A stretch of DNA of 64,000 bases from Paragordius varius. Lineage: Eukaryota; Animalia; Nematomorpha. Location of the stretch: NCBI GenBank assembly GCA_964247055.1, contig OZ176060.1:1054001-1118000 (forward strand), written 5' to 3'. Shown piece after piece: positions 613 through 64,000 of the stretch. A program made the position numbers and the translations under genes. A model generated the notes under the pieces. The model did not search any database, had not been told where the DNA came from, and was given only the letters and a program-made list of their open reading frames with translations. Each line of letters begins with the position of its first letter. The stretch's first letter is position 1.

Positions 613-670
613 ACAACTACACTCACAACAAGAGTGATGACGTCATCACTCTTGTTGTGAGTGTAGTTGT
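613..670. repeat. Perfect loop-less palindrome, 58 bp (exemplar; one per monomer, arms 26-30 bp in 46 of 49 copies)
   Basis: ACAACTACACTCACAACAAGAGTGATGAC|GTCATCACTCTTGTTGTGAGTGTAGTTGT; the right arm is the exact reverse complement of the left. Confidence 0.98.
637..646. promoter_or_regulatory. ATGACGTCAT, full CRE-type bZIP (ATF/CREB) consensus at the dyad axis (exemplar; TGACGTCA present in all 49 monomers)
   Basis: Exact match to the TGACGTCA octamer. The motif is certain; binding or regulatory function is not shown by sequence. Confidence 0.35.
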
Positions 671-3600
671 GAGTGATGTATTATTATTATTAGAAGAAGA
701 AGAAGAGAAGAAGAGAGAGAAGAAGGTTTTGTTGTTGATTCTTGTTGACACAGACACACATACATGATTGAATGAATGAATGAAGAAAATGTTACTCACT
801 ACTACTACTAAAGAAGAATGAAGAATATTGTTGGAGAAATACTAAATATTCTTGTTTTTTATACTGATTTTTGACTAAAAATGAAGAATTTTGGACATTC
901 TTACTAAATTTATGAATATTTATAGTTGAAAATGACATTTTTTCTACAATTTTAATGAAAAACAAGATTATTTCTGTGTTAAGATGACAATTTTGACACT
1001 TTTTTTGATAAAAATGAAGAATTTTGGACAATTTAATGAATATTTTTAAATATTTTGTTGAAAATTGACATTTTTAATACTTTTTAAGGTTTTTCTAGTG
1101 AAAATTCATGAATAATTGAGTTAAAATTTGAATAATTAGGAATTTTTATATTAAAATTTGAGTTTTTTTTCTAATTTTTCACTGAAAAAATGAATTTTTA
1201 CTTAAATTTTTGACACAAAAATGAATTTTTAGTTGAAATTTATCAAAAATTATTGAAAAAATGAATAAAATTTCAAAAATTAACACTTTTTTGATAAAAA
1301 AATAATTTTTTTCTCAAAATTCTGAATAAAAATTGACTTTTTTTCAAATTTTACAATAAAAAATGAATATTTTGTCTAATTTTTGATTCAAAAAAGGAAT
1401 TTTTAGTTGAAATTTATCAAAAATTATCAAAAAAATGAATAAAAATGTTAAAATTTTGAATTTTTTCAATATAAATATATTAATTTTTGTATTTTTTTGA
1501 TTAAAAACTAAATTATTCCTACGTAAAAATGAAATTTTAATCAAAAATGAGTAAAAATTGACAAAAAATAAGTAAAATATCCAACAAATTTTCAAAAAAT
1601 GTTCAAAAATGTCATTTATAAACCAAAAAAATGATAAAAAGTAACAAAAATAATTCAAAAATTCAAAAAAATAATCAAAAAAATTAAAAAAATTTAAAAA
1701 AATATTCAATTTCAACAAAAAAAATTCTTAAAATTGTCCTATTATTACACAAAAATAACAATGTTTCATTCAAAAATAACACTTTTCATTCTTCTTCTCT
1801 ATATATATACATATATATAATAACAAAAATAACAAATGACACTCATTTCATCACATATATAAATGAGAGAGAATGAGAGATGCAGCTACAACAACAATTA
1901 CTAGTGTGATGTGTGTGCATGAGTGAGTGGAGAGAGAGAGATGTATACACAACTACACTCATAACAAGAGTGATGACGTCATCACTCTTGTGGTGAGTGT
2001 TGTTGTGATGGACACTTACTCATTTAATAATGAAGAAGAAGAAGAGAAGAGTAGAGAAGAATGTTTTTGTTGTTGATTCTTGTTGACACACACATATATA
2101 CATGATTGAATGAATGAATGATGAAAATGTTACACTACTACTAAAGAAGAATAATGAGGAATATTGATGGAGAAATGAAGAAATTCTTGTTTTTTATACT
2201 GTTTTTTGAATAAAATGAAGAATTTTGGACATTTTTAATGAAAATTAATGAATATTACACTTGGAAATGACAATTTTGACATATTTTTTGATAAAAATGA
2301 AGAATTTTGGACATTCTTATTAATATTTTTGTTAAAAATTGATATTTTTGACACTTTTTAGGTTGTTTTTCTCAAGAATTCATCAATAATTGAGTTGAAA
2401 TTTAGAGAATTTTGAGTTTTTTCACTAAAATTTGATTTTTTTGTTAATTTTTTCAATAAAAAGTCATTTTTTTCACTAATTTTTAACTAAAAAATCAATT
2501 TTTCATTCTTTTTTTAACAAAAATGATGTTTTTTCTTGAAATTTTTCAGAAATTTTGACAAAATGAGCAAAATCTTTCAAAATTGAGAATTTTTTCCAAT
2601 AAAAATGAATTTATTCCTTAATTTTTGAATAAAAATTGAATTTTCTCTTGAAATTGAGCAGAAATTCTTCAAAAAATAAGTGAAATTTGTAAAAATTTAG
2701 TATTTTTTGAACAAAAATTAATTATTTCTTACTGAAAATTGAGTATTTTTATCAAAAATCGATTAAAAACTAGAGAAAATAACAAAAATTAAGTAAAATA
2801 TTCATCAAATCTTCAAAAATTCTTCAAAAATATCATTTTTCAACAAAAATAATCTTAAAATTCTAAATAATCAAACAAAAAATCAAAAATATTCAACATC
2901 AACAATGAAAAAATTAAAAAAAATAGTCAAAAATATTCAAAAATATTAAAAAATAACAAAATTCAACAAAAAATAACAATTTTTCATTCAAAAATTGCAT
3001 TCTTCATTCTTCTTCTCTATATACATATATATATATATACATATATATAATAATAATAATAACAAAAATAACAAATGACACTCATTTCATCCATTTACAA
3101 TTGAGAGAGAGAGAGATGTGTAGCAGCAACAACAACAGCAACAAGAGTGATGTGTGAGAGAGAGTGATGAGAGAGTGTGTACAACTACACTCACCACAAG
3201 AGTGATGACGTCATCACTCTTGTGGTGAGTGTAGTTGTTGTGAGTGATGAAGAAGAATATTATTATTATTAGAAGAAGAGGAAGAGAAGAGTTGAGAGAG
3301 AAGAATGTTTTTGTTGTTTATTCTTGTTGATACACATACACACATACATGATTGAATGAATGAATGAAGAAATTGTTACACTACTACTACAAAAGAAGAA
3401 TGAAGAATATTGATGGAGAAGTGATGATTATTCCTGTTTTTCACTTATTTTTGAATAAGAATAAGGTTTTTTGAGACAATTTTACTAAATTTATGAATAT
3501 TTCTGTGTTAAATTGACATTTTTGACACTTTTTTGATAATTTTACTCAAAATTCATGAATAAATGAGTTAAAATTTGAAGAATTTTGAGTTTTTTTCGAA

Positions 3601-6600
3601 TTTTTAACTAAAAATGAAGATTTTTTCTATGAATTTTTGATTAAAAAGATGAATTTTTCTTATTTTTTGAATAAAACATCAATTTTTAGTTGAATTTTTG
3701 ATGAAATTCTTGAAAAAATGAATAAAAATTTGAAAAATTAACACTTTTATTCAATAAATTTTATTTTTTTTGAATATTTTTGAATAAAAAATCAATTTTT
3801 AGTTCAAATTTATCAAAAATTGTCAAAAAAATGAGTAAAAATTAGAAAAAAAAGTGAAAATTTGCTAATTTTACTGTAAAAAATAATTAATTCTTACTCA
3901 AAATTGTCAATTATCATTGAAAAATAAGTAAAAACAAGAAAAAATGACAAAAAATAAGTAAAATATCCACTAAATATTCATAAAATCATCAAAAATGTCA
4001 TTTATAAACCAAAAAAATAATAAAAAATAACAAAAACAATTGAAAAATTAAAAAAAAAAATTCAAAAAATATCAAAAAATACTCAAAAAATAAAAAAATT
4101 AACAAAATTTCACAAAAAATAACAATTTTTCATTTAAAAATTCTTAAAATTGTCTTTATTCATTCAAAAATAACAATTCTTCTTCTCTATATACATATAT
4201 ATATAATAACAAAAATAACAAATAAAAATAACAATCATCACTCATTTCATCACATACATAAATGAGAGAGAAACACCCACACTCACTTTGTACAACAACA
4301 ACTACAACAACAACTAGTAGTGTGTGAGTGGAGAGAGAATGATATACAACAACACTCACCACAAGAGTGATGACGTCATCACTCTTGTGGTGAGTGTTGT
4401 TGTGACTGACACTTGTTATTAATGAAGAAGAATATTATTATTATTGGTTGAAGAAGAAGAAGAGAAGAGTTGAGAGAGAGAGAAGAAGGTTTTTTGTTGT
4501 TGATTCTTGTTGACACAAACACACATATATACATGATTAAATGAATGAATGAAGAGAATGTTACACTACTACTAAGAAGAATGAAGAATATTGTTGGAGA
4601 GATGATGATTAATCTTGATTTTTGTACTGTTTTTGACTAAAAATAAGAATTTTTGAGACAATTTTACTAGAAATAATGAATAATGTTGTTGAAAATGACA
4701 TTTTTGACACTTTTTGTTGATAAAAATGAAGAATTGTGAGACAATTTAAATGAAAAACAAGAATATTAGACTTAAAAATGACATTTTAGACACTTTTTAA
4801 TGATTTTTATTAATTTTTCATGAATAATACAGTTAAAACTTCAAGAATTTTCAGTTTTTTCAACAAAATTTCAGTTTTTTTTCTAATTTTTGACTAAAAT
4901 TAATCATTTTTCTTGTATTTTTGATTTAAAAAATGAATTTTTAGTTGAAATTTATCAAAAATTCTTGAAAAAATGAATAAAATCTCAAAAAATAACACTT
5001 TTTTTGATGAAAAAATAATTTTTTTCTCAAATTTCTCAATAAAAATTGAATTTATTCTTGAAATTTAGCAAAAATTGTCAAAAAATTGAGTAAAAATGAG
5101 TCAAAACTAGAAAAATTAGTGAAAATTTGTTAATTTTACTGTAAAAATGAATTTTTTTGAATAAAAAATAAATGATTTCTACTTAAAAATGAAAAATTTA
5201 ATTAAAAAATAAGTAAAAAGCACAAAAAAATAATAAAAAATATTCAAAATATCCAAAAAATATTCATAAAATCATCAAAAATGTCATTTTTTAACAAAAA
5301 AATCTTCAAAAATATTAATTTTAATGAATAAATCATCAATTTTTAACAAAAAAATAAAAAAAAATAACAATATTACACAAAAAATAACAATTTTTCATTC
5401 AAAAATAACAATGTTTCATTCAAAAATAACATTTTTATTCTTCTTCTCTATATACATATATATAAGAATAAAAATAACAAAAATAACAAATGACACTCAT
5501 TTCATTCATTTACAATTGATGGGAGTGTGAGACAGAGAGATGTGCAGCAACAACAACAATTAAGAGTGATGTGTATGTGTGTGAGAGAGTGAGTGGAGAG
5601 AGAGATGTGTGTAACAACAACAACACTCACCACAAGAGTGATGACGTCATCACTCTTGTGGTGAGTGTTGTTGTGATGGACACTTACTCATTTAATAATG
5701 AAGAAGAAGAAGAGAAGAGAGAGAAGAATGTTTTTGTTGTTGATTCTTGTTGACACACACATATATACATGATTGATTGAATGAATGAAGAAACTGTTAC
5801 TCACTACTACTAAAGAAGAATGAAGAATATTGTTGAAGAGATGATGATTATTCTTGTTTTTTATACTGTTTTTTGAATAAAAATGACGATTTTTGAGACA
5901 ATTATACTCAAAATTAAGAATATTTTTGTGTTTAATTGACATTTTTGACACTTTTAAGCTTGTTTTTCTCATAATTCATGAATAAATGAATGAATTTTTG
6001 AACAATTTTGATTTTTTTGAGTAAAATTTGAGATTTTTAACTGAAAAATGAACTTTTTTTCTCTAATTTTTGATTAAAAAGATGAATTTTTCTTATTTTT
6101 TGAATAAAACATCAATTTTTAGTTGAAATTTATGAAAAATTCTCGAAAAAATGATTAAAAATTTCGAAAATTAAGAGTTTTATTCATGAAAATTCATTTT
6201 TTTGGTCAAATTTTAAATAAAAATTAAATTTTCTCTTGAAATTTCTCAAAAATTCTTCAAAAAATAAGTGAAAATTACAAAAATTCAGAATTTTTTGAAT
6301 AAAAAATGAATTATTCATCGTCAAAATTGAATTTTTCATTATTTAATGAGTAAAAAGTACTAAAAATGACAAAAAAATAAGTAAAATATCCACAAAATAT
6401 TCAAAAAATCATCAAAAATGTCATTTTTAAACCAAAAAATTCTTCAAAAATATTAATTTTAATGAAAAAATAACAAAAATAATTAAAAAATATTCAAAAA
6501 AAATCAAAAAAATAAAAAAATATACAAAATTCAACAAAAAATTAAAAATATTCTTAAAATTGTCCTATTATTCAACAAAAAATAACATTTTTCATTCAAA

Positions 6601-6803: not shown

Positions 6804-6863
6804 CCATCACACACACATCAAATGAGTGATGACGTCATCACTCATTTGATGTGTGTGTGATGG
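6804..6863. repeat. Variant palindrome, ATCAAAT arm type, 60 bp (also at dyads 24682, 35767, 37071)
   Basis: CCATCACACACACATCAAATGAGTGATGAC|GTCATCACTCATTTGATGTGTGTGTGATGG; ATCAAAT replaces AACAA in both arms. Confidence 0.97.
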
Positions 6864-9844
6864 ACACTTATTCACTCACTTACTATTAATAAATGAAGAA
6901 GAAGAAGAAGAAGAAGAAGAGAAGAGAGAGAAGAAGGTTTTGTTGTTGATTCTTGTTGATACACACATACACATACAAGATTAAATGAATGAATGAAGAA
7001 AATGTTACACTACTACTAGAGAAGAATGATGAATATTGTTGGAGAAATACTAAATATTCTTGATTTTCATCATTTTTTTGAATAAAATGAAGAATTTTTG
7101 AGACAATTATTACTAAATTTATGTATATTACTATTAAAGTTGACATTTTTTAATAATTTTAAGGTTGTTTTTCTCATAATTCATGAATAATTGAGTTTTA
7201 AATTGAAGAATTTTGAGTTTTTCCACTTGAAATTTACTTTTTTTGATTTTTTTTTCAATAAAAATTATTTTTTTCTCTAATTTTTGAATGAAAATGAAGA
7301 ATTTTGGACAATTTTAATGAAAAACAAGAATTTTTTTGTATAAAAATGATATTTTTGACACTTTTTTTGATGATTTACTCAATAATTCTGAAAAAATGAA
7401 TGAAAATCTGGAAAAATGAAGAATTTTTTCACTAAAAATTGACTTTTTTTTAAATTTTACAGTAAAAAATGAATATTTTCTCTACTTTTTGATTAAAAAA
7501 ATGAATTTTTCTTATTTTTTGAACAAAAATGATGTTTTTTCTTGAAATTTTTGAGAAATTCTTACAAAATTCAACAAAAATTTCAAAAATTGACACTTTT
7601 TTTGATGAAAAAATCAATTTTTTGAATATTTTTGAGTAAAAATTGACAATTTTCATGTGATTATTCAATAATTCTAGAAAAAATGAGTAAAAATGAGTAA
7701 AAACAAGCAAAAATTATAGAAAATTTGAAATTTTTACTGTAAAAATGAATTTTATTTTGAATATCATGAATAAAAATGTTATTTTCTCTCAAAAAAAGTG
7801 TCGAAAAATTCTTCAAAAATAAGTAAAATCTTCAAAAATGTCACTTTTAAACCAAAAAATTAATAAAAAATAACAAAATTCAACATCAACAATGAAAAAA
7901 TTAATAAAAATTAAGAAAAATCATTAAAAAAATTAAAAAAATTAAAAATATTCTTAAAATTGTCCTATTATTACAGAAAAAATAACAATGTTTCATTCAA
8001 AAATAACATTCTTCATTCTTTATATATATATATATATATAAGATTAAAAATAACAAAAATAACAATGTCAAAGTAACAAATGACACTCATTTCATCCACA
8101 TACATAAATGAGAGAGAGAGAGAGAGAGTTGTGCAGCAACAACAACTACAACTAGTGTGTGTGTGAGAGAGATGTACAACAACACACACAACAAGAGTGA
8201 TGACGTCATCACTCTTGTTGTGTGTGTTGTTGTGAGTGACACTTACTCACTTGTATTATTATTATTATTAGTAGTAGAAGAAGAAGAGAAGAGAAGAGAG
8301 AGAAGAATGTTTTGTTGTTGATTCTTGTTGAGACACATACACACATACATGATTGAATGAATGAATGATGAAAATGTTACTCACTACTACTACTAAAGAA
8401 GAATGAAGAAGAAATTGTTGAAGAAGTGAGTGTTATTCTTGTTTTTCATTCTTTTTTTGACTAAAATGATTGTTTTTTTGAACAATTTTACAAGAATTAT
8501 TAATCTTTTAGTTGAAAAAGACATTTTTGATACTTTTTTTTGATGAAAATGAAGATTTTTAGACATTTTTAATGTAAATCATGAATATTTAGGTTGAATA
8601 TTGACAATTTTGATACTTTTTAAGGTTATTCTAGTGAAAATTCATAAATAAATGTGTTAAAATTTGAAGAATTTTGATTTTTTTCACCTAAAATTGAGTT
8701 TTTTTTTTACTTTTTCACTGAAAAAATGAATTTTTTCTAAAATTTTTGACAAAAAAGTGAAATTTTGGTTGAAATTTATCAAAAATTGTTGCAAAATTGA
8801 ACAAAAATTTCAGAAATTAACACTTTTTTTGACAAAAAGATGAATTTTTCTTATTTTTTTGTATAAAACATCAATTTTTAGTTGAATTTTTGATGAAATT
8901 CTTGAAAAAATGAATAAAAATTTCAAAAATTGACATTTTTTTTGATTAAAAATCATTTATTTTTGAATTTTCATGAATAAAAAATGAATATTTCTATGAT
9001 ATTTTTGTAAAATTGTCAAAAAAATGAGTGAAAATGAGTAAAAAGTTGAAAAATTTGCTAAATTTACTGTAAAAGCAATTATTTCAAATAAAAACTCAAT
9101 TATTACTACTTAAAAATGAGAATTTTAATCAAAAAATGAATAAAAATCACAAAAAATGAATAAAAAATAAGTAAAATATCCACAAAATATTAAAAAAATG
9201 ATCAAAAATGTCATTTTTAAACAAAATAATCTTCAAAAATATTAATTTTAATCAAAAATCATCATTTTCAACAAAAAAATTAAAAAAAAAATCAAAAAAT
9301 ATTCAAAAATGTCATTTTTCATTTAAAAATTCTTAAAATTGTCCTATTTTTCATTCAAAAATAACAATTTTCATTCTTATTTATATATACATATATATAT
9401 AATAATAATAATATTAATATAACAAATAAAAATAACAAACATCACTCATTTCATCACATACATAAATGAGAGAGAAACACCCACACTCACTTTGTACAAC
9501 AACAACAATTAAGAATGATGTGTATGTGTGAGAGTGATGTGTGTGAGAGAGAGTGTAACTACAACAACACTCACCACAAGAGTGATGACGTCATCACTCT
9601 TGTGGTGAGTGTTGTTGTGATGGACACTTGTTAATTAATGAAGAAGAAGAAGAAGAGAAGAGAGAGAGAAGAAGGTTTTTGTTGTTGATTCTTGTTGAGA
9701 CACACACACACATACAAGATTGAATGAATGAATGAAGAAAATGTTACTCACTACTACTAAAGAAGAATGAAGAAATTGTTGAAGATATACTAAATATTCT
9801 TGTTTTACTACTGTTTTTGAATAAAATCAAGATTTTTGACACAT

Positions 9845-11571
9845 TTTTGATGAATTTATTAATATTACACTTAAAAATGACTATTTTGACAATTTTTAAG
9901 GTTATTTTTATCTAAATTCATGAATAATTGAGTTAAAATATTGAAAATTAAGAATTTTTCAGTGAAAATTTAGTTTTTTTTTCTAGTTTTTTGAATAAAT
10001 TCTGAATATTTCTCATTTTTTTCAATAATTTTTGAGTTTTTTCTTAAAATTGTTGAGAAATTCTCACAAAAATGAGTAAAATTTGTAAAAATTTGAGTTT
10101 TTTTTCAACAAAACTGAATTAATTTTCAATTTTTTGAGAAAAAAATGAATTTTTAGTTGAAATTCATCAAAAATTATCAAAAAAATGAGCAAAAACTCAA
10201 AAAAATAAGTGAAATATTTAAAAATTTAGAATTTTTTAGATAAAAAATGAATTATTCATCGTCAAAATTGAATTTTTCATTAAAAACTGAGTAAAAAGTA
10301 GTAAAAATGACCAAAAATAACTAAAATATCCACACAAAATATTCAAAAAATGTCCAAAAATGTCATTTCTTTAACCAAAAAATTCTTCAAAAATATTAAT
10401 TTTAATCAAAAAATCATCATTTTCAACAAAAAAATTAAAAAAAAATCAAAAAATATTCAAAAAATGTCATTTTTCAACAAAAAATATTCTTAAAATTGTC
10501 TTTATTTAATCAAAAAATAACAATTCTTCTTCTCTATATATACATATACATATATAATAATAAAAATAACAAATTAAAAATAACAAATAAAAATAACAAA
10601 TGACACTCATTTCATCCACATACATATATAAATGAGTGAGAATGAGAGAGAGTGTATGTGTAGCAACAACAACAACAACTACAACTACAACAATCACTAG
10701 TGTGTGAGTGGTGAGTGAGTGGAGAGAGAGAGAGTGTACCACAACAACACTCACCACAAGAGTGATGACGTCATCACTCTTGTGGTGAGTGTTGTTAAAG
10801 AAGAAGAATATTATTATTAGAGTAGAAGAAGAAGAAGAGAAGAGAGAGAAGAATGATTTTGTTGTTGATTCTTGTTGAGATACACACATATATACATGAT
10901 TGAATGAATGAATGAAGAGAATGTTACACTACTACTAAGAAGAATGATGAATATTGTTGAAGAAATACTAAATATTCTTGTTTTACTACTGTTTTTGATT
11001 AAAATGAAGAATTTTGAGACAATTTTGATGAATTTATTAATATTACACTTAAAAATGACTATTTTGACAATTTTTAAGGTTATTTTTATCTAAATTCATG
11101 AATAATTGAGTTAAAATATTGAAAATTAAGAATTTTTCAGTGAAAATTTAGTTTTTTTTTCTAGTTTTTTGAATAAATTCTGAATATTTCTCATTTTTTT
11201 CAATAATTTTTGAGTTTTTTCTTAAAATTGTTGAGAAATTCTCACAAAAATGAGTAAAATTTGTAAAAATTTGAGTTTTTTTTCAACAAAACTGAATTAA
11301 TTTTCAATTTTTTGAGAAAAAAATGAATTTTTAGTTGAAATTCATCAAAAATTATCAAAAAAATGAGCAAAAACTCAAAAAAATAAGTGAAATATTTAAA
11401 AATTTAGAATTTTTTAGATAAAAAATGAATTATTCATCGTCAAAATTGAATTTTTCATTAAAAACTGAGTAAAAAGTAGTAAAAATGACCAAAAATAACT
11501 AAAATATCCACACAAAATATTCAAAAAATGTCCAAAAATGTCATTTCTTTAACCAAAAAATTCTTCAAAAA
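9845..11571 (+). repeat. Near-identical duplicated spacer segment (~550 bp, offset 1178)
   Basis: TGAATTTATTAATATTACAC begins at 9851 and 11029; near-identity continues to about 10393/11571, while the dyad modules of the neighbouring monomers differ. Confidence 0.85.
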
Positions 11572-12830
11572 ATAATATTAAAATATTAAAAAATCAAAAA
11601 ATACTCAAAAAATTAAACAAAAAATCAAAAAAATAAAAAAATAATCTTAAAATTGTCTTTATTTATTCAAAAAATAACAATATTACACAAAAAAATAATA
11701 TTTCATTCAAAAATAACATTCTTCATTCTTCTTCTCTATATACATATATATATATAAAATAATAAAAATAACAAAAATAACAAATATATATACAAATACA
11801 TATATTCTTCTTATAAATGAGTGTGAGAGAGAGAGATGTGCAGCAGCACAACAGCAACAACAACAACTACAAGAAGGATGTGTGTGAGAGAGAGAGTGTG
11901 TAACTACAACAACACTCACAACAAGAGTGATGACGTCATCACTCTTGTTGTGAGTGTTGTTGAAGAAGAATATTATTATTATTAGATGAAGAAGAAGAAG
12001 AAGAAGAGAAGAGAGAAAAAGAATGTTTTTGTTGTTGATTCTTGTTTGACACATACATACATGATTAAATGAATGAATGAATGAATGAAGAGAATGTTAC
12101 TCACTACTACTACTAAGAAGAATGAAGAATATTGTTGAAGAAATGAGTGTCATTCTTGATTTTCATTCTTTTTTAGACTAAAATGATTGTTTTTTTGAAC
12201 AATTTTACAAGAATTATTAATCTTTTAGTTGAAAATTAACAATTTTTATACATTTTTTGATGAAAATGAATGTTTTTTGGACATTTTTAATGTAAATCAT
12301 GAATATTTAGGTTGAATATTGACAATTTTGATACTTTTTAAGGTTATTCTAGTGAAAATTCATGAATAAATGTGTTAAAATTTGAAGAATTTTCAGTTTT
12401 TTGAACAAAAATTGAGTATTTTTGCTAATTTTGTGAATAAAAATTCATTTTTTTCTCTAATTTTTGATTCAAATTTTTAGGATTTTCGGAGTTAAAATAC
12501 ACATTTTTAGCATTCAGCTGCCGGAAAATTATTTTTTAATTTCTCTAAATCAGCTATTTTTACTTTTTTTTCGTTTTTTAAACGGAGCTCAGAATTTCCA
12601 CCTTAAAAAAATGTAAGAAAATTTTGGGGCTGGTAGTTCCTTGCTCAACAACGTTTAAAAAAATTCATTTCATTAAAAAAATTTTAGAATTATCTGTTTT
12701 TAGAATATCCTCAGGTAAACATTTTGAACTCCTTAAACTAGAAATTTGATATAAAAATAGCCAAATCAGCTGTTTTAGTCATTTTTTACTTCATAAAAAT
12801 AATTTTTATGAAATATTATATAAAATCGGA

Positions 12831-13566
12831 CTTGATGGAGCTCTAAATCCTGACCTCAAGAAAGATGTGAGTTTGGGCAGGCGGTTCAGACCTCCTTTTA
12901 ACTGTTCAAAAATCTATAAACAGCTTTTTAAAAATTCAAATCAGCTGTTGCTCATTCTAACGACTAAAATGACTTGTTTCATTATAAAATCAGCCGTTTT
13001 TGGAATTCAAACATTTTAAAATTGTCTTTATGAAATATTTTATAAAATTAGACTTGATGGAGCTCTAAATCCTGACCTCAAGAAAGATCTTAGTGAAAAA
13101 TTTGTCATTGGCTTTTTTAAGTTCTCACATCAGCTGTTCTATTGACTTTTTTAAGTTCTCATATCAGCTGTTCTTTCTTCTGTATAAAACACACAATCTT
13201 ATTTATAATATTAATGTAAAACTCAAAACTAGCCTTATTTAAATTTATTTCTTATATAGCTGATTTTTTACATTTTCCTCAAACATTTTATAAAATCTTC
13301 TATACTTGATGGAGCTTTAAATCCTGACCTCAAGAAAGATGTGAGTGAAAAATTTGGGGCTGGCGGTTCAGACTTGCTTATAAAAATTTAAAAAAAAATA
13401 AAATAACAGATGTTTTAAGGTTCTGAACACTATTTTGACTTCTCCACACAAATTTTTTTGATAATCAGCTGATTTTTTATTCAAATAACTCATTTTTATG
13501 AAATTTTTCAGACTTGATGGAGCTCTTAACCCTGACCTCAAGAAAGACGTAAGCTTTGGGGCTGGT
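12831..13566 (+). pseudogene. Four broken copies of the same putative exon (12831-12912, 13053-13103, 13305-13382, 13513-13566)
   Basis: All translate to LDGALNPDLKKD. The 12831 copy has an 8-nt frameshifting loss, the 13053 copy diverges after F17, the 13305 copy has TAA at codon 29, and the 13513 copy lacks EK in frame and is then truncated. Confidence 0.45.
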
Positions 13567-13715
13567 TAAAAAAATCTATAAAAGCTGCTTTTGAGCTCTA
13601 TTTAAATCGGCTGTTTTTGCTCATTCTTACGACTAAAATGACTTGTTTAATCCTCCTACATCATAAAACCAGCTGTTTTCGCTCATTTTGATTAATTTTT
13701 TATTCATAAAACAGA

Positions 13716-13859
13716 CTAGATGGGGCTCTAAATCCTGACCTCAAGAAAGACGTGAGTGAAAAATTTGGGGCTGGCGGTTCAGACCTCCTTATAACGGTTC
13801 AGAAAGCTATGGGTTGTGAATGTGCCATCAGTTATAAAACCATGTCTTCCAATGCTTAA
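13716..13859 (+). pseudogene. Putative coding-exon remnant, most intact copy: LDGALNPDLKKDVSEKFGAGGSDLLITVQKAMGCECAISYKTMSSNA* (protein family not recognised)
   Basis: 47 open codons, preceded by an AT-rich tract ending in CAG (13712-13714) and ending TAA followed by TGA. Differences from sister copies are mostly synonymous. No start codon or upstream exon found. Confidence 0.5.
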
Positions 13860-15656: not shown

Positions 15657-15659
15657 ACT

Positions 15660-52500: not shown

Positions 52501-52503
52501 AAC

Positions 52504-54832
52504 AAAAATAACAATGTTTCATTCAAAAATAACATTTTTATTCTTCTTCTCTATATACATATATATATAATAACAAAAATAACAAAAGACACTCATTTCA
52601 TCACATATATAAATGAGAGAGAAAGAGAGAAACACAACTACAACAACAACAACTACTAGTGTATGTGAGAGAGAGTGTAACACACCACCATCACACACAC
52701 AACAAGAGTGATGACGTCATCACTCTTGTTGTGTGTGTGATGGACACAACTACTCACTCACTTGTTAATTAATGAAGAAGAAGAAGAAGAGAAGAGAGAG
52801 AAGAAGGTTTTGTTGTTGATTCTTGTTGAGACATACACATATACAAGATTGAATGAATGAATGAAGAAAATGTTACACTACTACTACTAGAAGAAGAATG
52901 AAGAATATTGTTGTAGAATGATGAATACTCTTGATTTTTATACTGTTTTTTGACTAAAAATGACATTTTTAAGACAACTTTAATAAAAATTAATGAATAA
53001 TATGGTTGAAAATGACAATTTTGACAATTTTTTAGATAAAAATGAAGATTTTTTGACATTTTTAATGAAAATTATGAATATTTAGGTTGAATACTGACAA
53101 ATTTGATACTTTTTAAGCTTATTGTAGTGAAAATTAATGAATAAATGACTAATTTTTGAAGAATTTTGATTTTTTTCATCTAAAATTGAGTTTTTTTTCT
53201 AATTTTTCACTGAAAAAATGAATTTTTTCTTAAATTTTTGACAAAAAAGTGAAATTTTGGTTGAAATTTATCAAAAATTGATGCAAAATTGAACAAAAAT
53301 TTCAAAAATTAACACTTTTTTGATGAAAAAATCAATTTTTTGAATATTTTTGAGTAAAAATTGACAATTTTCATGTGATTATTCAATAATTCTAGAAAAA
53401 ATGAGTAAAAATGAGTAAAAACAATCAAAAATAAGTTAAAAATTGCAATTTTTACTGGAAAAATGAATTTTATTTTGAATATCATGAATAAAAATGTTAT
53501 TTTCTCCTAAAATGTATCGAAAAATTCTTCAAAAATAAGTAAAAACTCTCAAAATTGTCAAATTTAAACAAAAAAATTGACATTTTGCAACAAAAATATT
53601 CTTTATTAAACAAAAAAAATCAAAAAATACTCAAAAAATGAATAAAATTAAAAAAAATTCAAAAAAATTCTTAAAATTGTCCTATTATAACACAAAAAAT
53701 AACAATGTTTCATTCAAAAATAACATTTTTATTCTTCTTCTCTATATACATATATATATAATAACAAAAATAACAAAAGACACTCATTTCATCACATATA
53801 TAAATGAGAGAGAAAGAGAGAAACACAACTACAACAACAACAACTACTAGTGTATGTGAGAGAGAGTGTAACACACCACCATCACACACACAACAAGAGT
53901 GATGACGTCATCACTCTTGTTGTGTGTGTGATGGACACAACTACTCACTCACTTGTTAATTAATGAAGAAGAAGAAGAAGAGAAGAGAGAGAAGAAGGTT
54001 TTGTTGTTGATTCTTGTTGACACACAAACACATATACAAGATTGAATGAATGAATGAAGAAAATGTTACACTACTACTACTAGAAGAAGAATGAAGAATA
54101 TTGTTGTAGAATGATGAATACTCTTGATTTTTATACTGTTTTTTGACTAAAAATGACATTTTTAAGACAACTTTAATAAAAATTAATGAATAATATGGTT
54201 GAAAATGACAATTTTGACAATTTTTTAGATAAAAATGAAGATTTTTTGACATTTTTAATGAAAATTATGAATATTTAGGTTGAATACTGACAAATTTGAT
54301 ACTTTTTAAGCTTATTGTAGTGAAAATTAATGAATAAATGACTAATTTTTGAAGAATTTTGATTTTTTTCATCTAAAATTGAGTTTTTTTTCTAATTTTT
54401 CACTGAAAAAATGAATTTTTTCTTAAATTTTTGACAAAAAAGTGAAATTTTGGTTGAAATTTATCAAAAATTGATGCAAAATTGAACAAAAATTTCAAAA
54501 ATTAACACTTTTTTGATGAAAAAATCAATTTTTTGAATATTTTTGAGTAAAAATTGACAATTTTCATGTGATTATTCAATAATTCTAGAAAAAATGAGTA
54601 AAAATGAGTAAAAACAATCAAAAATAAGTTAAAAATTGCAATTTTTACTGGAAAAATGAATTTTATTTTGAATATCATGAATAAAAATGTTATTTTCTCC
54701 TAAAATGTATCGAAAAATTCTTCAAAAATAAGTAAAAACTCTCAAAATTGTCAAATTTAAACAAAAAAATTGACATTTTGCAACAAAAATATTCTTTATT
54801 AAACAAAAAAAATCAAAAAATACTCAAAAAAT
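52504..54832 (+). repeat. Near-identical tandem duplication, period 1191-1193 bp (about 2 copies)
   Basis: Dyads 52715/53906; a 2-bp difference in the (CA)n tract downstream. Confidence 0.88.
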
Positions 54833-57800
54833 CATCATTTTCAACAAAAAAATTAAAAAAATTCAAAAATAATATTCAAAATTAACAATATTACACCAAA
54901 AATAACAATGTTTCATTCAAAAATAACAATATTCATTCTTCTTCTCTATATATACATATATATATAATAATAACAAAAATAACAAATAAAAATAACAAAT
55001 GACACTCATTTCATCCATCAAAAATGAGAGAGAAACACCACATTCATTCTTCACCATGTACAACTACAACAACAACAACAACTAGTAGTGTGTGTGAGAG
55101 AGAGAGTGCAACAACAACACTCACCACAAGAGTGATGACGTCATCACTCTTGTGGTGAGTGTTGTTGTGGTGAAGAAGAATATTATTATTATTATTATAG
55201 TAGAAGAAGAAGAAGAAGAGAAGAAGAAGAATGTTTTTGTTGTTGATTCTTGTTGAGACACACACATATATACATGATTGAGTGAATGAATGAAGAAAAT
55301 GTTACACACAACTACTAAAGAAGAATGAAGAAGAAATTGTTGAAGAAGTGATGAATATTCTTGTTTTATATACTGTTTTTTGAATAAAAATAAGAATTTT
55401 TGACATTTTTAATAAAATTATTAATATTTTTAGTTGAAAATGACATTTTTTCTACAATTTTAATGAAAAACAAGATTAATTCTGTGTTAAGATGACAATT
55501 TTTACACTTTTTTCGATGATTTACTCAACAATTTTGGACATTCTTAATCAAATTATGAATATTTTTGTTGAAAATTGACATTTTTGATACTTTTTAATGT
55601 TTTTCTAGTGAAAATTCATGAATAATTGAGTTAAAAATTGAAAAATCTATAGTTTTTTCATGAAAATTTGAGTTTTTTTCTAATTTTTCACTAATAAAAT
55701 GAATTTTATCTCTATTTTTTGACTAAAAAATGAATTTTTAGTTGAAATTTCTTTAAAATTCTCACAAAATTGAACAAAAATTTGAGAAATTGACACTTTT
55801 TTTGAATAAAAATTGATTTTTGTTGAATTTTTTGACTTAAAATTGAATATTTGAATGATAATTATCTAAAATTCTTGAAAAAATGAGTAAAAATTAGAAA
55901 AAATGAGAAAAACAACTAAAATATCCACAAAATATTCATATAATCATCAAAAATGTCATTTCTTAAAACAAAAAATTCTTCAAAAATATTAATTTTAATC
56001 AAAAAATCATCATTTTCAACAAAAAAATTAAAAAAATTCAAAAATAATATTCAAAATTAACAATATTACACCAAAAATAACAATGTTTCATTCAAAAATA
56101 ACAATATTCATTCTTCTTCTCTATATATACATATATATATAATAATAACAAAAATAACAAATAAAAATAACAAATGACACTCATTTCATCCATCAAAAAT
56201 GAGAGAGAAACACCACATTCATTCTTCACCATGTACAACTACAACAACAACAACAACTAGTAGTGTGTGTGAGAGAGAGAGTGCAACAACAACACTCACC
56301 ACAAGAGTGATGACGTCATCACTCTTGTGGTGAGTGTTGTTGTGGTGAAGAAGAATATTATTATTATTATTATAGTAGAAGAAGAAGAAGAAGAGAAGAA
56401 GAAGAATGTTTTTGTTGTTGATTCTTGTTGAGACACACACATATATACATGATTGAGTGAATGAATGAAGAAAATGTTACACACAACTACTAAAGAAGAA
56501 TGAAGAAGAAATTGTTGAAGAAGTGATGAATATTCTTGTTTTATATACTGTTTTTTGAATAAAAATAAGAATTTTTGACATTTTTAATAAAATTATTAAT
56601 ATTTTTAGTTGAAAATGACATTTTTTCTACAATTTTAATGAAAAACAAGATTAATTCTGTGTTAAGATGACAATTTTTACACTTTTTTCGATGATTTACT
56701 CAACAATTTTGGACATTCTTAATCAAATTATGAATATTTTTGTTGAAAATTGACATTTTTGATACTTTTTAATGTTTTTCTAGTGAAAATTCATGAATAA
56801 TTGAGTTAAAAATTGAAAAATCTATAGTTTTTTCATGAAAATTTGAGTTTTTTTCTAATTTTTCACTAATAAAATGAATTTTATCTCTATTTTTTGACTA
56901 AAAAATGAATTTTTAGTTGAAATTTCTTTAAAATTCTCACAAAATTGAACAAAAATTTGAGAAATTGACACTTTTTTTGAATAAAAATTGATTTTTGTTG
57001 AATTTTTTGACTTAAAATTGAATATTTGAATGATAATTATCTAAAATTCTTGAAAAAATGAGTAAAAATTAGAAAAAATGAGAAAAACAACTAAAATATC
57101 CACAAAATATTCATATAATCATCAAAAATGTCATTTCTTAAAACAAAAAATTCTTCAAAAATATTAATTTTAATCAAAAAATCATCATTTTCAACAAAAA
57201 AATTAAAAAAATTCAAAAATAATATTCAAAATTAACAATATTACACCAAAAATAACAATGTTTCATTCAAAAATAACAATATTCATTCTTCTTCTCTATA
57301 TATACATATATATATAATAATAACAAAAATAACAAATAAAAATAACAAATGACACTCATTTCATCCATCAAAAATGAGAGAGAAACACCACATTCATTCT
57401 TCACCATGTACAACTACAACAACAACAACAACTAGTAGTGTGTGTGAGAGAGAGAGTGCAACAACAACACTCACCACAAGAGTGATGACGTCATCACTCT
57501 TGTGGTGAGTGTTGTTGTGGTGAAGAAGAATATTATTATTATTATTATAGTAGAAGAAGAAGAAGAAGAGAAGAAGAAGAATGTTTTTGTTGTTGATTCT
57601 TGTTGAGACACACACATATATACATGATTGAGTGAATGAATGAAGAAAATGTTACACACAACTACTAAAGAAGAATGAAGAAGAAATTGTTGAAGAAGTG
57701 ATGAATATTCTTGTTTTATATACTGTTTTTTGAATAAAAATAAGAATTTTTGACATTTTTAATAAAATTATTAATATTTTTAGTTGAAAATGACATTTTT

Positions 57801-59122
57801 TCTACAATTTTAATGAAAAACAAGATTAATTCTGTGTTAAGATGACAATTTTTACACTTTTTTCGATGATTTACTCAACAATTTTGGACATTCTTAATCA
57901 AATTATGAATATTTTTGTTGAAAATTGACATTTTTGATACTTTTTAATGTTTTTCTAGTGAAAATTCATGAATAATTGAGTTAAAAATTGAAAAATCTAT
58001 AGTTTTTTCATGAAAATTTGAGTTTTTTTCTAATTTTTCACTAATAAAATGAATTTTATCTCTATTTTTTGACTAAAAAATGAATTTTTAGTTGAAATTT
58101 CTTTAAAATTCTCACAAAATTGAACAAAAATTTGAGAAATTGACACTTTTTTTGAATAAAAATTGATTTTTGTTGAATTTTTTGACTTAAAATTGAATAT
58201 TTGAATGATAATTATCTAAAATTCTTGAAAAAATGAGTAAAAATTAGAAAAAATGAGAAAAACAACTAAAATATCCACAAAATATTCATATAATCATCAA
58301 AAATGTCATTTCTTAAAACAAAAAATTCTTCAAAAATATTAATTTTAATCAAAAAATCATCATTTTCAACAAAAAAATTAAAAAAATTCAAAAATAATAT
58401 TCAAAATTAACAATATTACACCAAAAATAACAATGTTTCATTCAAAAATAACAATATTCATTCTTCTTCTCTATATATACATATATATATAATAATAACA
58501 AAAATAACAAATAAAAATAACAAATGACACTCATTTCATCCATCAAAAATGAGAGAGAAACACCACATTCATTCTTCACCATGTACAACTACAACAACAA
58601 CAACAACTAGTAGTGTGTGTGAGAGAGAGAGTGCAACAACAACACTCACCACAAGAGTGATGACGTCATCACTCTTGTGGTGAGTGTTGTTGTGGTGAAG
58701 AAGAATATTATTATTATTATTATAGTAGAAGAAGAAGAAGAAGAGAAGAAGAAGAATGTTTTTGTTGTTGATTCTTGTTGAGACACACACATATATACAT
58801 GATTGAGTGAATGAATGAAGAAAATGTTACACACAACTACTAAAGAAGAATGAAGAAGAAATTGTTGAAGAAGTGATGAATATTCTTGTTTTATATACTG
58901 TTTTTTGAATAAAAATAAGAATTTTTGACATTTTTAATAAAATTATTAATATTTTTAGTTGAAAATGACATTTTTTCTACAATTTTAATGAAAAACAAGA
59001 TTAATTCTGTGTTAAGATGACAATTTTTACACTTTTTTCGATGATTTACTCAACAATTTTGGACATTCTTAATCAAATTATGAATATTTTTGTTGAAAAT
59101 TGACATTTTTGATACTTTTTAA
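54828..59122 (+). repeat. Near-identical expansion, period 1175 bp (about 3.6 copies)
   Basis: Dyads 55139/56314/57489/58664; identical ORF-track entries offset by 1175. Confidence 0.93.
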
Positions 59123-61448
59123 GGTTTTTTTGAGAAAATTCATGAATAATTGAGTTAAAAATTGAGAAATCTAGAGTTTTTTCATTAAAATTTTAGTTTT
59201 TTTTATAGTTTTTTGAATTAAAATTCATTTTTTTCTTTAGTTTTTGACAAAAAATTGAATTTTTCATTCTTTTTTGAACAAAAATGAAGTTTTTTCTTGA
59301 AATTTTTGAGAAATTCTTACAAAATTTAACAAAAATTTCAAAAATTGACACTTTTTTTGATAAAAAAATCATTTTTTTGAATATTTTTGAGTAAAAATTG
59401 ACAATTTTCATGTGATTATTCAATAATTCTAGAAAAAATGAGTAAAAATGAGTGAAAATGAGTAAAAACAAGCAAAAATAAGTGAAAAATTGCAATTTTT
59501 ACTGGAAAAATAAATTTTATATTAAATTTCATGAATAAAAATGTCAGTTCCATCTATAATGTATGGAAAAATTTCTCAAAAATAAGTAAAAACTGTCTAA
59601 AATTGTCATTTTTCATCAAAAATATTGAGATTTATTAGTAAAATATATTTTTAAAAATCAAAAATTACTCAAAAACAATTAAAAAATACTCAAAAAATTA
59701 AAAAAATTAAAAATATTCTTAAAATTGTCCTATTTTTCATTCAAAAATAACAATGTTTCATTCAAAAATAACATTCTTCATTCTTCTCTATATATATACA
59801 TATACATATATAAGAATAAAAATAACAAATAAAAGTAACAAATGACACTCATTTCATCAATTAAAAGTGTGAGAGAGAGAGAGATGTGTAGCAGCAACAA
59901 CAACAGCAACAAGAGTGATGTGTGTGAGAGAGAGATGTATACACAACTACACTCACAACAAGAGTGATGACGTCATCACTCTTGTTGTGAGTGTAGTTGT
60001 GATGGACACTTGTTAATTAATGAAGAAGAAGAAGAGAAGAGTTGAGATGAAAGAGAGAAGAATGTTTTTGTTGTTGATTCTTGTTGACACACACACACAT
60101 ACAAGATTGAATGAATGAATGAAACAAATGTTACACTACTACTACTAAGAAGAATGAAGAAGAAATTGTTGAAGAAATGAGTGTCATTCTTGATTTTCAT
60201 TCTTTTTTTGAATAAAAATGAAGAATTTTGGACATTTTTACTAAATTTATGAATATTTATGTTTTAAATTGAATATTTTGACACTTTTTTCGATGATTTA
60301 CTCAAGAATTTTGGACATTCTTAATAAAATTATTGATATTTTTGATGAAAATTGACAATTTTGACACATTTTTTGATTTTTACTGAATAATTCTTGAATA
60401 ATTGAGTTAAAAATTGAAAAATCTAGAGTTTTTTCATTAAAATTTGAGTTTTTTTCTAGTTTTTTGAATGAATTTTCATTCTTTTCTCTAATTTTTGACA
60501 AAAAATTGAATTTTTAGTTGAAATTTAGGAAAAATTCTTGAAAAAATGAATAAAATTTCAAAAAATAACACTTTTTTTGATGAAAAAATGATTTTTTTCT
60601 CAAATATCTGAATAAAATTTGAATTTTTTCTTAAAATTTAGCAAAAAATCTTCAAAAAATGAATAAAAATTAGAAAAAATGAGTAAAATTTACTTAAATT
60701 TAGAATTTTTTGAATAAAAACTAAATTATTCCTACTTAAAAATGAGAAATTTAATTAAAAAATGAGTAAAAACTATAAAAAATGACCAAAAATAAATAGA
60801 ATATCAAAAAAATATTCAAAAATTCTTCAAAAATGTCATTTATGAACCAAAAAAATGATAAAAAATAACAAAAACAAATAAAAAATTAAAAAAATATTTA
60901 AAAATTAATAAAAAATACTCAAAAAATGAATAAAATTAAAAAAATTCTTAAAATTGTCCTATTATTCAACACAAAAATAACAATATTCTTCTTCTCTATA
61001 TACATATATATATATAATAACAAAAATAACAAATAAAAATAACAAATCAAAATAACAAATGACACTCATTTCATCCACATACATAAATGAGAAACAGAGT
61101 CACACAACCACAACTACAACAACACACACATCACTACTCTTGTATATGTATGCGTGTGAGAGAGAGAGAGAGAGTGTAACAACAACAACACTCACAACAA
61201 GAGTGATGACGTCATCACTCTTGTTGTGAGTGTTGTTGTGAGTGATGAAGAAGAAGAAGAGAAGAGTTGAGAGAGAGAGAAGAAGGTTTTTGTTGTTGAT
61301 TCTTGTTGACACACACACACATACATGATTAAATGAATGAATGAAGAAAATGTTACACTACTACTAGAAGAAGAATGAAGAATATTGTTGTAGAAATGAT
61401 GAATAATCTTGATTTTTATACTGTTTTTTGACTAAAAATGACATTGTT

Positions 61449-64000
61449 GAGACAATTTTACTAGATTTACTAATAATTTTGTTGAAAATTAACAATTTTT
61501 ATACATTTTTTGATGAAAATGAATGTTTTTTGGACAATTTTGATGAATATTTATGAATATTATTGTTAAAATTGACATTTTTGACACATTTTTGATGATT
61601 TGCTCAACATTTCATGAATAAATGACTAAAAAGTTGAAGAATTTTGAGTTTTTTTCTGTTTTTTTTGACTAAACTATGAATTTTTCTCTTATTTTTCAAT
61701 AAATTTTGAGTTTTTTCTTGAAATTTTTCTAAAATTCTCACAAAAATGAAGAAAAATTAGAAAAATTATCATTTTTTTTGAGTAAAAATTGATTTTTTTT
61801 GAATTTTTTGAGTTAAAATTGAATATTTAAATGATAATTATCTAAAATTCTTGTAAAAATGAGTGAAAATTAGAAAAAATAAGTAAAAATTTGTTAATTT
61901 TAGTGTAAAAATTCATTTTTTCTTCTTCAAAATTGACATTACCCAATTAAAAAATGTTAAAAATAAGAAAAAACTAGAAAAAATAAGTAAAAATTCACAA
62001 AATATTCAAAAAATGTTCAAAAATGTCATTTTTAAACTCAAAAATTAATAAAAAATAACAAAAATAATTAAAAAATACTCAAAAACAATTAAAAACAATT
62101 AGAAAATTAACAAAATTCAACTAAAAATTAAAAAAATTCTTAAAATTGTCCTATTTTTCATTGAAAAATAACATTTTTCATTCTTTATATATACATATAT
62201 ATAATAACAAAAATAACAAATCAAAAATAACAAACATCACTCATTTCATCCACATACATAAATGAGAGAGAGAGAGAAACACACCCACATTCACCATGTA
62301 CAACAACTACAACTACTAGTGTGTGTGTGAGAGAGTGGAGAGAGAGAGTGTGTGAGAGAGTGTAACACAACAACACTCACCACAAGAGTGATGACGTCAT
62401 CACTCTTGTGGTGAGTGTTGTTGTGATGGACACTTACTCATTTAATAATGAAGAAGAAGAAGAGAAGAGTAGAGAGAGAAGAAGGTTTTTGTTGTTGATT
62501 CTTGTTGACACAAACACATATATACATGAATGAATGAATGAATGAAGAGAATGTTACACTACTACTATAGAAGAATGAAGAATATTGTTGAAGAAATGAG
62601 TGTTATTCTTGTTTTTCAACAATTTTTGAATAAAAATGAGTATTTTTGAGACAATTTTACTAGATTTACTAATAATTTTGTTGAAAATTAACAATTTTTA
62701 TACATTTTTTGATGAAAATGAATGTTTTTTGGACAATTTTGATGAATATTTATGAATATTATTGTTAAAATTGACATTTTTGACACATTTTTGATGATTT
62801 GCTCAACATTTCATGAATAAATGACTAAAAAGTTGAAGAATTTTGAGTTTTTTTCTGTTTTTTTTGACTAAACTATGAATTTTTCTCTTATTTTTCAATA
62901 AATTTTGAGTTTTTTCTTGAAATTTTTCTAAAATTCTCACAAAAATGAAGAAAAATTAGAAAAATTATCATTTTTTTTGAGTAAAAATTGATTTTTTTTG
63001 AATTTTTTGAGTTAAAATTGAATATTTAAATGATAATTATCTAAAATTCTTGTAAAAATGAGTGAAAATTAGAAAAAATAAGTAAAAATTTGTTAATTTT
63101 AGTGTAAAAATTCATTTTTTCTTCTTCAAAATTGACATTACCCAATTAAAAAATGTTAAAAATAAGAAAAAACTAGAAAAAATAAGTAAAAATTCACAAA
63201 ATATTCAAAAAATGTTCAAAAATGTCATTTTTAAACTCAAAAATTAATAAAAAATAACAAAAATAATTAAAAAATACTCAAAAACAATTAAAAACAATTA
63301 GAAAATTAACAAAATTCAACTAAAAATTAAAAAAATTCTTAAAATTGTCCTATTTTTCATTGAAAAATAACATTTTTCATTCTTTATATATACATATATA
63401 TAATAACAAAAATAACAAATCAAAAATAACAAACATCACTCATTTCATCCACATACATAAATGAGAGAGAGAGAGAAACACACCCACATTCACCATGTAC
63501 AACAACTACAACTACTAGTGTGTGTGTGAGAGAGTGGAGAGAGAGAGTGTGTGAGAGAGTGTAACACAACAACACTCACCACAAGAGTGATGACGTCATC
63601 ACTCTTGTGGTGAGTGTTGTTGTGATGGACACTTACTCATTTAATAATGAAGAAGAAGAAGAGAAGAGTAGAGAGAGAAGAAGGTTTTTGTTGTTGATTC
63701 TTGTTGACACAAACACATATATACATGAATGAATGAATGAATGAAGAGAATGTTACACTACTACTATAGAAGAATGAAGAATATTGTTGAAGAAATGAGT
63801 GTTATTCTTGTTTTTCAACAATTTTTGAATAAAAATGAGTATTTTTGAGACAATTTTACTAGATTTACTAATAATTTTGTTGAAAATTAACAATTTTTAT
63901 ACATTTTTTGATGAAAATGAATGTTTTTTGGACAATTTTGATGAATATTTATGAATATTATTGTTAAAATTGACATTTTTGACACATTTTTGATGATTTG
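61449..64000 (+). repeat. Near-identical expansion, period 1199 bp (at least 2.1 copies, open at window end)
   Basis: Dyads 62395/63594; GAGACAATTTTACTAGATTTAC recurs at about 61449, 62648 and 63847. Confidence 0.9.

Follow-up and report, generated by a model that had tools for sequence, protein, structure and literature searches.

Mirror-image variation between the copies of a short perfect palindrome in a satellite array of Paragordius varius

In large palindromes, such as the ampliconic palindromes of the human Y chromosome, arm-to-arm gene conversion acts over kilobases to megabases, in the presence of a spacer and through homologous recombination. A similar relationship, in which the arms within one palindrome evolve in concert while the palindromes diverge from one another, was found in a tandem satellite array of the nematomorph Paragordius varius (assembly GCA_964247055.1, contig OZ176060.1, positions 1,054,001–1,118,000 of the forward strand; these 64,000 nt are hereafter the window), every monomer of which carries one palindromic dyad; here, however, the arms measure only 30 bp, have no spacer and are too short for the homologous recombination pathway. 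How perfect stems and palindromes survive random mutation is an old question, for which template switching has been proposed, mostly from single-locus comparisons of species. The closest described process is quasi-palindrome correction, or template-switch mutation (the Ripley model), which resembles the present case in that short inverted-repeat arms are homogenised and extended, mirrored multi-base and indel changes are made in one step, and perfect stems are created and kept, with expansion at the sites of dimeric transcription factors. That foldback switching or hairpin repair perfects quasi-palindromes had been taken as known in an earlier note on this window, and the literature bears this out: the mechanism is established in other systems (PMC8794818, PMC5453318, PMC8604942, PMC13100816, PMC3820800), where multi-base compensatory changes in stems by template switching are documented and inverted repeats expand at sites bound by dimeric factors (PMC13100816). 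The known cases concern single loci compared across species or mutants, whereas the window holds 49 paralogous dyads of one array, with coexisting symmetric haplotypes, symmetric reshuffling and a hybrid dyad, and the process is read here from the sequence pattern.

Satellites with dyad symmetry or conserved boxes (PMC5889037; the macro-dyad of Tribolium madens, PMC13081366) resemble the present array in having a conserved block with a predicted non-B dyad among variable sequence, and here, too, cruciform formation is predicted for the dyad of a tandem monomer. The dyads of the satellites in PMC5889037 are shorter than 10 bp, whereas those of P. varius have perfect arms of 26–30 nt, occur once per 1.2 kb and covary between copies. 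In Oscheius tipulae and Auanema rhodense, the Sequence For Elimination (PMC13060919; 10.64898/2026.08.27.747507) is likewise a palindrome, some 29 bp in length, that lies in AT-rich surroundings within a genome abounding in tandem repeats, and a protein dimer has been proposed to read it. That motif is degenerate (3–8 mismatches), has a GGC-N3-GCC centre, is single at break sites and was judged not to need pairing, whereas the dyads described here are perfect, spacer-less, centred on GACGTC and present in every monomer. Assignment to this motif was rejected, GAC and GTC abutting at the centre without a spacer and the GGC/GCC pair being absent.

Each dyad was extended outward from its centre, between GAC and GTC, and the arms were compared as reverse complements (Table 1). 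The hexamer GACGTC occurs 49 times in the window, once per monomer, and in 46 of the 49 dyads the arms were exact reverse complements over 26–30 nt, forming palindromes of 52–60 bp (perfect arms of 29 nt in 22 dyads, 26 nt in nine, 28 nt in eight, 30 nt in six and 27 nt in one). The remaining three were imperfect, with 3 mismatches in 30 nt around centre 1977 and one shared mismatch around centres 50430 and 51596. The earlier note had given the same numbers, 49 monomers with 46 exact over 26–30 bp, and its description of the dyads proved correct in every countable detail. The permutation comparison of within-unit and between-unit identity that it had proposed was carried out and gave 5 arm-versus-arm mismatches within units, compared with 130 on average and never fewer than 69 in permuted pairings (5 was reached in none of 100,000). 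When the data were collapsed to the ten distinct haplotype pairs, which removes the effect of recent duplications, 4 mismatches were found versus a mean of 46, a value reached in 3 of 200,000 permutations; with recent duplicates removed (34 lineages), mismatches between the arms of a dyad numbered 4 in 884. The covariation score of the 27 gapless rows was 0.073 versus 0.032 in shuffles, none of 500 shuffles reaching the former, and it fell to 0.012 or less when the partner column was slid by 1–3 positions. Arms were confirmed to match within a copy and to differ between copies.

Comparison over 26 nt per arm revealed eight symmetric haplotypes (A in 17 dyads, B in nine, E in six, D and F in four each, C in three, G in two and H in one) and, besides these, two asymmetric haplotype pairs; at least eight arm haplotypes had been reported in the earlier note. 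The three variable sites and the 2-bp length change that had been reported were found again, with every change mirrored on the opposite arm. Counted from the centre, the sites lie at 24 nt (CAA/CTA), 20 nt (CTC/CAC) and 15 nt (CACAA/AACAA), and read outward their two states are G/T at site 15, A/T at site 20 and T/A at site 24. The corresponding base pairs were CG/AU at site 15 (15 versus 9 rows), UA/AU at site 20 (22 versus 3) and AU/UA at site 24 (21 versus 3), so that all three pair changes are transversions (C:G to or from A:T, or T:A to or from A:T) without a G:U (wobble) intermediate. The states at sites 15, 20 and 24 were G, A, T in haplotype A; T, T, T in B; G, A, A in C; T, A, A in D; T, A, T in E; and T, T, A in H once its deletion is allowed for. 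Six of the eight possible combinations were present, every one of them symmetric, and the four-gamete test failed for sites 15 and 24 and for sites 20 and 24, which are at most 10 bp apart.

Larger changes were mirrored as well. Haplotype F carries a complex change by which each arm is 2 bp longer; in F and G, the (GTT)2/(AAC)2 block is gone from both arms; and in H, 3 bp are missing on each side of the centre, TGACGTCA remaining intact. The block loss and the H deletion are absent from the list in the earlier note. At least six mirrored events are needed to account for the haplotypes, plus at least two reshuffling events; these were counted from the haplotypes themselves, since the flank tree was star-like and poorly resolved. 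Flank relationships did not track arm haplotype. Haplotype A was present in at least 11 lineages whose 300 bp flanks were only about 75% alike, and neighbouring dyads were often of different haplotype (for example, D, d*/A, C and A). It should be noted that a 13-mer of the F-type right arm (6834–6863), TCATCACTCATTT, recurs in the same orientation in a conserved block some 150 bp upstream (e.g., 24530–24550). The complex F change could have been copied ectopically from that block; the 4 additional matching nucleotides are only weakly significant.

One of the imperfect dyads, at 1948–2007, was a mosaic. On the left, the arm and about 20 nt beside it belong to the D type found at 41869 and 59971, apart from one private change; on the right, arm and flank correspond to the A type found at 62395. 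Exchange between monomers can thus bring different haplotypes together in one dyad. Dyads 38 and 39 represent two young one-sided variants.

Comparison of 38 distinct dyad contexts revealed two layers within the palindrome. The inner 10 + 10 bp, with TGACGTCA at the centre, were essentially invariant (nucleotide diversity 0.003), whereas diversity was 0.12–0.13 in the outer 16 + 16 bp and 0.145 (right) and 0.23 (left) in the well-aligned flank columns. Among the 34 lineages, substitution mismatch per aligned site was 0.121 in the arms and 0.08–0.14 in the flanks, the latter with an additional 28–35% of gap columns. The outer arms consequently vary between copies about as much as the flanks, but always as mirror images. 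Private alleles numbered 0.08 per site in the arms versus 0.28 and 0.47 in the flanks; this 3–6-fold rarity means that neutral evolution with symmetrisation alone is insufficient, and the invariance of the inner 20 bp means that the sequence is constrained as well as the pairing.

The CRE/ATF octamer TGACGTCA is a site for bZIP dimers, and a bZIP site spans 8–12 bp. Judged by its letters, the core resembles such a site, the exact octamer being present in all 49 dyads and surviving the mirrored 3 bp deletion of dyad 28; it differs in that 20 bp are invariant and 52–60 bp symmetric. The 8-mer half-site GAGTGATG was found in 85 copies versus 0.3 expected from composition; in the same orientation, 22 copies lie at −50 to −100 and 15, in as many monomers, at +20 to +39, and 13 copies of the complement lie at −130 to −180. 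This clustering would fit either a protein-binding cluster or a record of local templated copying. In addition, part of the inner left arm (AGAGTGATGTG or AGAATGATGTG) is repeated directly 58–96 nt upstream of 21 dyads (e.g., 544–556), with no mirrored right partner.

The symmetry ends sharply. Pairing was retained in 23 of 25 rows at 28 nt from the centre and then in 17, 11 and 8 of 25 at the following positions, and between 27 and 56 nt the side-to-side symmetry (4.47 versus 4.26 shuffled) did not exceed chance, in line with the earlier statement that the sequence directly outside the arms is asymmetric. The edge of the perfect part falls at a (CAA)n/(TTG)n tract, and the flanks are rich in simple repeats and indels. 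The left flank of dyad 11 (17186–17203; centre 17230), when reverse-complemented, matched the usual right-flank type at 17 of 18 nt, which points either to former arms of at least 44 nt or to one templated extension of that reach. Sequence symmetry otherwise stops abruptly at about 29 nt; a reach of about 30 bp had been proposed in the earlier note. The trace at dyad 11, the fixed inner 20 bp and the scarcity of private variants in the arms go beyond what had been described before. With regard to a possible recombination hotspot at the dyad, the Mantel correlation between adjacent 300 bp windows was weak everywhere (0.10–0.16) and was −0.015 across the dyad.

At least six mirrored changes, indels among them, cannot be produced by chance, by shared descent alone or by a plain dimer site, and consequently one of the two options of the earlier note, intramolecular re-symmetrisation with a reach of about 30 bp or selection on pairing, must hold; its either/or reading is thus supported. 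The dyads have the properties of a quasi-palindrome, namely, close inverted arms of 26–30 nt without a spacer that can fold back, with single-strand DNA folds of −28 to −33.5 kcal/mol (z-score −7 to −11), and clustered or indel changes that are mirrored (F, H and the F/G block loss, along with the three single sites). We lean towards a process at the DNA level because three sites within 10 bp have been symmetrically reshuffled, G:U intermediates are missing, there is no spacer and a mosaic dyad exists; copying is further favoured because it would produce mirrored indels and complex changes in one step and because the outer arms change at approximately the rate of the flanks. We therefore give about even credence to a palindromic core of constrained sequence whose arms are rewritten from one another, in short patches, by a DNA-level process. 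The inner 10 + 10 bp with the CRE-like TGACGTCA, constant in sequence, would most simply be the recognition site of a dimeric DNA-binding protein, while the outer 16–20 bp of each arm would be free to change and would be kept as the exact reverse complement of the partner by copying inside the dyad. A nascent or unwound strand would fold back and the sequence of one arm would be copied into the other, whether through template switching at the quasi-palindrome or through mismatch repair in an extruded hairpin, so that a change in one arm, indels included, would be either erased or written onto the other arm. With correction in short patches, a hybrid dyad such as that at 1948–2007 would resolve to new and again symmetric combinations, and the observed symmetric reshuffling of nearby sites is what such patchwise correction predicts. 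The process would end at about 29 nt, where the slippage-prone (CAA)n/(TTG)n edge and the flank indels may throw the two sides out of register.

Several points weigh against arm-to-arm copying as a full account. The pattern is based on only about six to eight independent mirrored events, and the single-event origin of any one of them could be demonstrated only with outgroup or population data. Hairpin and cruciform are predicted structures, the protein is putative, and selection on pairing alone might in principle explain the symmetry without special copying. The rarity of private variants in the arms and the invariant inner 20 bp imply that copying is not the whole story and that some sequence-level selection, or a targeted, preferential homogenisation between monomers, would be needed as well. 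Furthermore, a hairpin corrector would not repair a 4-nt loop, so that the perfect centre has to be ascribed to sequence constraint rather than to such correction.

Selection could act on pairing in the DNA itself if the dyad had to be extruded as a cruciform or hairpin in order to work, for example, in starting replication, as a target for a nuclease or as a non-B-DNA signal of the centromere type; mismatched monomers would then be lost or remain unamplified, and the mirrored variants would be surviving double mutants. The palindrome is indeed the best-kept block of the monomer (inner diversity 0.003; 0.08 singletons per site versus 0.28–0.47 in the flanks), and it lies between AT-rich flanks with A/T tracts phased at 10.25 bp. 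Such AT-rich flanks are said, after the work of Lilley and co-workers, to favour cruciform extrusion. Dyad symmetry has been reported as common in centromeric satellites (PMC5889037). Selection, however, is weak where any single copy is outnumbered by so many others in an array; independent mutation would not readily yield double mutants that bypass wobble pairs, mirrored indels or the symmetric reshuffling of three sites within 10 bp; and structure alone leaves the fixed sequence of the inner 20 bp unexplained, for which reasons we regard selection on DNA pairing as rather unlikely. A transcribed monomer, in which the stem of 27–28 bp would be the precursor of a small interfering RNA or microRNA and pairing would be selected in the RNA, is less probable still, and we consider it unlikely. 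The RNA fold is stable on either strand (−44 to −49.5 kcal/mol, z-score about −10), the stem fits one Dicer product, and there were weak matches to many microRNA precursor models. All Rfam matches, however, were to unrelated families and far below the gathering score (21–37 versus 56–150 bits; the best, 37 versus 67.5), no Rfam family reached that score in the window, and the weak matches reflect a generic hairpin. Neither compensatory changes by the G:U route nor a free loop was found: none of the three covarying pairs (AU/UA, UA/AU and CG/AU) uses wobble, the stem lacks bulges and G:U pairs, and the flanks are unpaired. All 49 dyads are spacer-less with a self-complementary centre, which leaves ACGT as the loop, and a hairpin RNA has no need of a self-complementary centre.

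If the whole 52–60 bp were simply the symmetric binding site of a dimeric protein, with haplotypes spread by unequal exchange and neither pairing nor copying involved, the invariant core with TGACGTCA and the excess of GAGTGATG half-sites nearby would be accounted for. Half-sites that are recognised separately, however, are not thereby made to covary, the outer sequence is displaced against the core by mirrored indels in a manner that a rigid footprint would not tolerate, and the nematode elimination motif, which is proposed to be read by a dimer, has 3–8 mismatches (PMC13060919), whereas none occur in 46 of 49 dyads here; we therefore hold a dimer site alone to be highly improbable. The runs of identical monomers make the assembly worth checking, and symmetrisation of the arms during assembly or polishing was accordingly considered. 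The three asymmetric dyads indicate that symmetry was not enforced, the mosaic dyad in particular showing that it is not automatic in the data, and the eight symmetric haplotypes occur in differing flank contexts. We know of no consensus step that copies one arm onto the other over 30 bp, and an artefact appears scarcely credible. It is also very doubtful, though somewhat less so than either of these two explanations, that the dyad is the working site of repeat amplification, an origin-like module made up of an invariant initiator site, half-site copies on both sides, a hairpin-forming palindrome, flanks with phased A-tracts and a change of strand composition exactly at the dyad. The extruded hairpin would then be the starting point of replication or nicking, as at viral or rolling-circle origins, and the arms would be rewritten from each other at every copying of the unit, which would account for the symmetry as well as for the few haplotypes that have spread.

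The array appears to be a case of arm homogenisation, seen with unusual clarity in many copies of one short palindrome whose core is constrained in sequence. With symmetric haplotypes, one hybrid and two young one-sided variants side by side among 49 copies in one genome, it could, together with raw reads, more of the array and a sister species, provide the correction rate, the tract length (apparently below 10 bp) and the reach (about 29 nt) of the process, which would separate correction from selection. A two-layered satellite element, with a fixed core and free but mirrored outer arms, also bears on the upkeep of conserved satellite boxes.

Three further identities were rejected. The junction of transposon terminal inverted repeats, or a spacer-less miniature inverted-repeat transposable element, does not agree with matching within the dyad rather than across the monomer, with neighbours of different haplotype, or with outer edges that vary and lack a constant duplicated dinucleotide (target-site duplication). 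PATRR-type repeats comprise hundreds of AT-rich bp, whereas the arms here are of 26–30 nt and GC-rich for the monomer. A reading of the monomer as a whole as a large decayed palindrome is not supported, since reverse-strand alignments of about 60% identity have many centres and symmetry is lacking at 27–56 nt; the excess reverse-complement score of the flanks is due to their mirrored simple-repeat composition.

Table 1. Positions of the array, the insert and the 49 dyads in the window; haplotypes are given as left/right arm, and arm length is that of perfect complementarity
Feature	Positions	Strand	Haplotypes	Arm (nt)	Remarks
Tandem array of AT-rich monomers of about 1.2 kb	1–64000	+			Consensus 1226 bp, 21–24% GC; from dyad spacing, composition and consensus
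Unrelated insert, about 4.1 kb	12474–16570	.			Breaks one monomer at consensus position about 530–570; outside the palindrome system
Dyad 1	613–670	.	D/D	29	
Dyad 2	1948–2007	.	Mosaic	14	Left D type with one private change, right A type; 3 mismatches in 30
Dyad 3	3181–3238	.	C/C	29	
Dyad 4	4346–4403	.	A/A	29	Folded as DNA and RNA
Dyad 5	5617–5674	.	A/A	29	
Dyad 6	6804–6863	.	F/F	30	Form 2 bp longer per arm
Dyad 7	8176–8233	.	B/B	29	
Dyad 8	9561–9618	.	A/A	29	
Dyad 9	10743–10796	.	A/A	27	
Dyad 10	11907–11962	.	E/E	28	
Dyad 11	17202–17259	.	A/A	29	
Dyad 12	18453–18508	.	B/B	28	
Dyad 13	19588–19645	.	A/A	29	
Dyad 14	20809–20866	.	A/A	29	
Dyad 15	22147–22204	.	E/E	29	
Dyad 16	23388–23443	.	A/A	28	
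Dyad 17	24657–24708	.	F/F	26	29 nt with one outer mismatch
Dyad 18	26029–26086	.	A/A	29	
Dyad 19	27244–27295	.	B/B	26	First of seven identical 1221 bp monomers
Dyad 20	28465–28516	.	B/B	26	
Dyad 21	29686–29737	.	B/B	26	
Dyad 22	30907–30958	.	B/B	26	
Dyad 23	32128–32179	.	B/B	26	
Dyad 24	33349–33400	.	B/B	26	
Dyad 25	34570–34621	.	B/B	26	
Dyad 26	35739–35796	.	F/F	29	
Dyad 27	37043–37100	.	F/F	29	
Dyad 28	38208–38259	.	H/H	26	Mirrored 3 bp deletion beside centre; TGACGTCA retained
Dyad 29	39384–39441	.	C/C	29	
Dyad 30	40592–40649	.	C/C	29	
Dyad 31	41840–41899	.	D/D	30	
Dyad 32	43072–43131	.	D/D	30	
Dyad 33	44360–44415	.	E/E	28	
Dyad 34	45569–45624	.	E/E	28	
Dyad 35	46778–46833	.	E/E	28	
Dyad 36	48043–48100	.	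A/A	29	
Dyad 37	49239–49296	.	A/A	29	
Dyad 38	50403–50458	.	a*/A		28 nt with 1 mismatch; one-sided C-to-G in left arm, 20 nt from centre
Dyad 39	51569–51624	.	a*/A		Duplicate of adjacent dyad 38
Dyad 40	52688–52743	.	G/G	28	
Dyad 41	53879–53934	.	G/G	28	
Dyad 42	55111–55168	.	A/A	29	
Dyad 43	56286–56343	.	A/A	29	
Dyad 44	57461–57518	.	A/A	29	
Dyad 45	58636–58693	.	A/A	29	
Dyad 46	59942–60001	.	D/D	30	
Dyad 47	61182–61239	.	E/E	29	
Dyad 48	62366–62425	.	A/A	30	
Dyad 49	63565–63624	.	A/A	30	

The array extends past both ends of the window, with a GC content of 21–24% throughout. Dyads follow one another at 1119–1385 bp, except for one gap of 5296 bp caused by the unrelated insert. Identical monomers occur in runs of seven × 1221 bp (27269–35765), four × 1175 bp (55139–58664) and three × 1209 bp (44387–46805), which are due either to very recent amplification in place or to a problem of the assembly. 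The 100 bp windows holding the arms have 36–40% GC versus 12–17% in the monomer body, the arms thus being among the most GC-rich parts. The GC skew flips at the dyad (mean −0.14 on the left and +0.39 on the right, over −330 to +330 of each dyad); in the consensus it is −0.88 shortly before the dyad and +0.72 just after it, with the reverse flip in mid-monomer. Base composition is mirrored across the dyad, whereas the sequence is not. From ±30 to ±250 around each dyad, the flanking sequence is a patchwork of (GA)n, (GT)n, (CAA)n, (GAA)n, (ATT)n, (TGAA)n, (ACT)n and (TA)n, and these simple repeats explain most of the length variation between monomers. The phasing of A/T tracts at 10.25 bp is array-wide (spectral peak 562 times the median; AAAA autocorrelation maxima in the window at 10, 20–21, 30–31 and 41), indicates intrinsically curved DNA and recalls the periodic A/T clusters of nematode genomes.

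The core 22-mer and 26-mer had no exact matches in the metagenome, prokaryotic-genome and viral collections, nor was any related sequence found in them; the seven metagenome matches of the invariant 20-mer were rejected as unrelated (38–51% GC, arms of 10–15 nt). The dyad sequence was not found in the literature searched. The open reading frames of the window are of low complexity and none is of note, no homologue was found for one of 153 residues that spans a dyad, and telomere-type repeats are absent from the window. The insert lies in the AT-rich body of its monomer and contains five copies of a 220–340 bp repeat with an in-frame stretch (LDGALNPDLKKD...); a protein search with the latter matched only bacterial SprB and RTX repeat proteins, which were judged spurious. 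This stretch is flanked by splice-site-like ttttcag and gtgagt, and about 15 copies of CAGACGA occur further along the insert.

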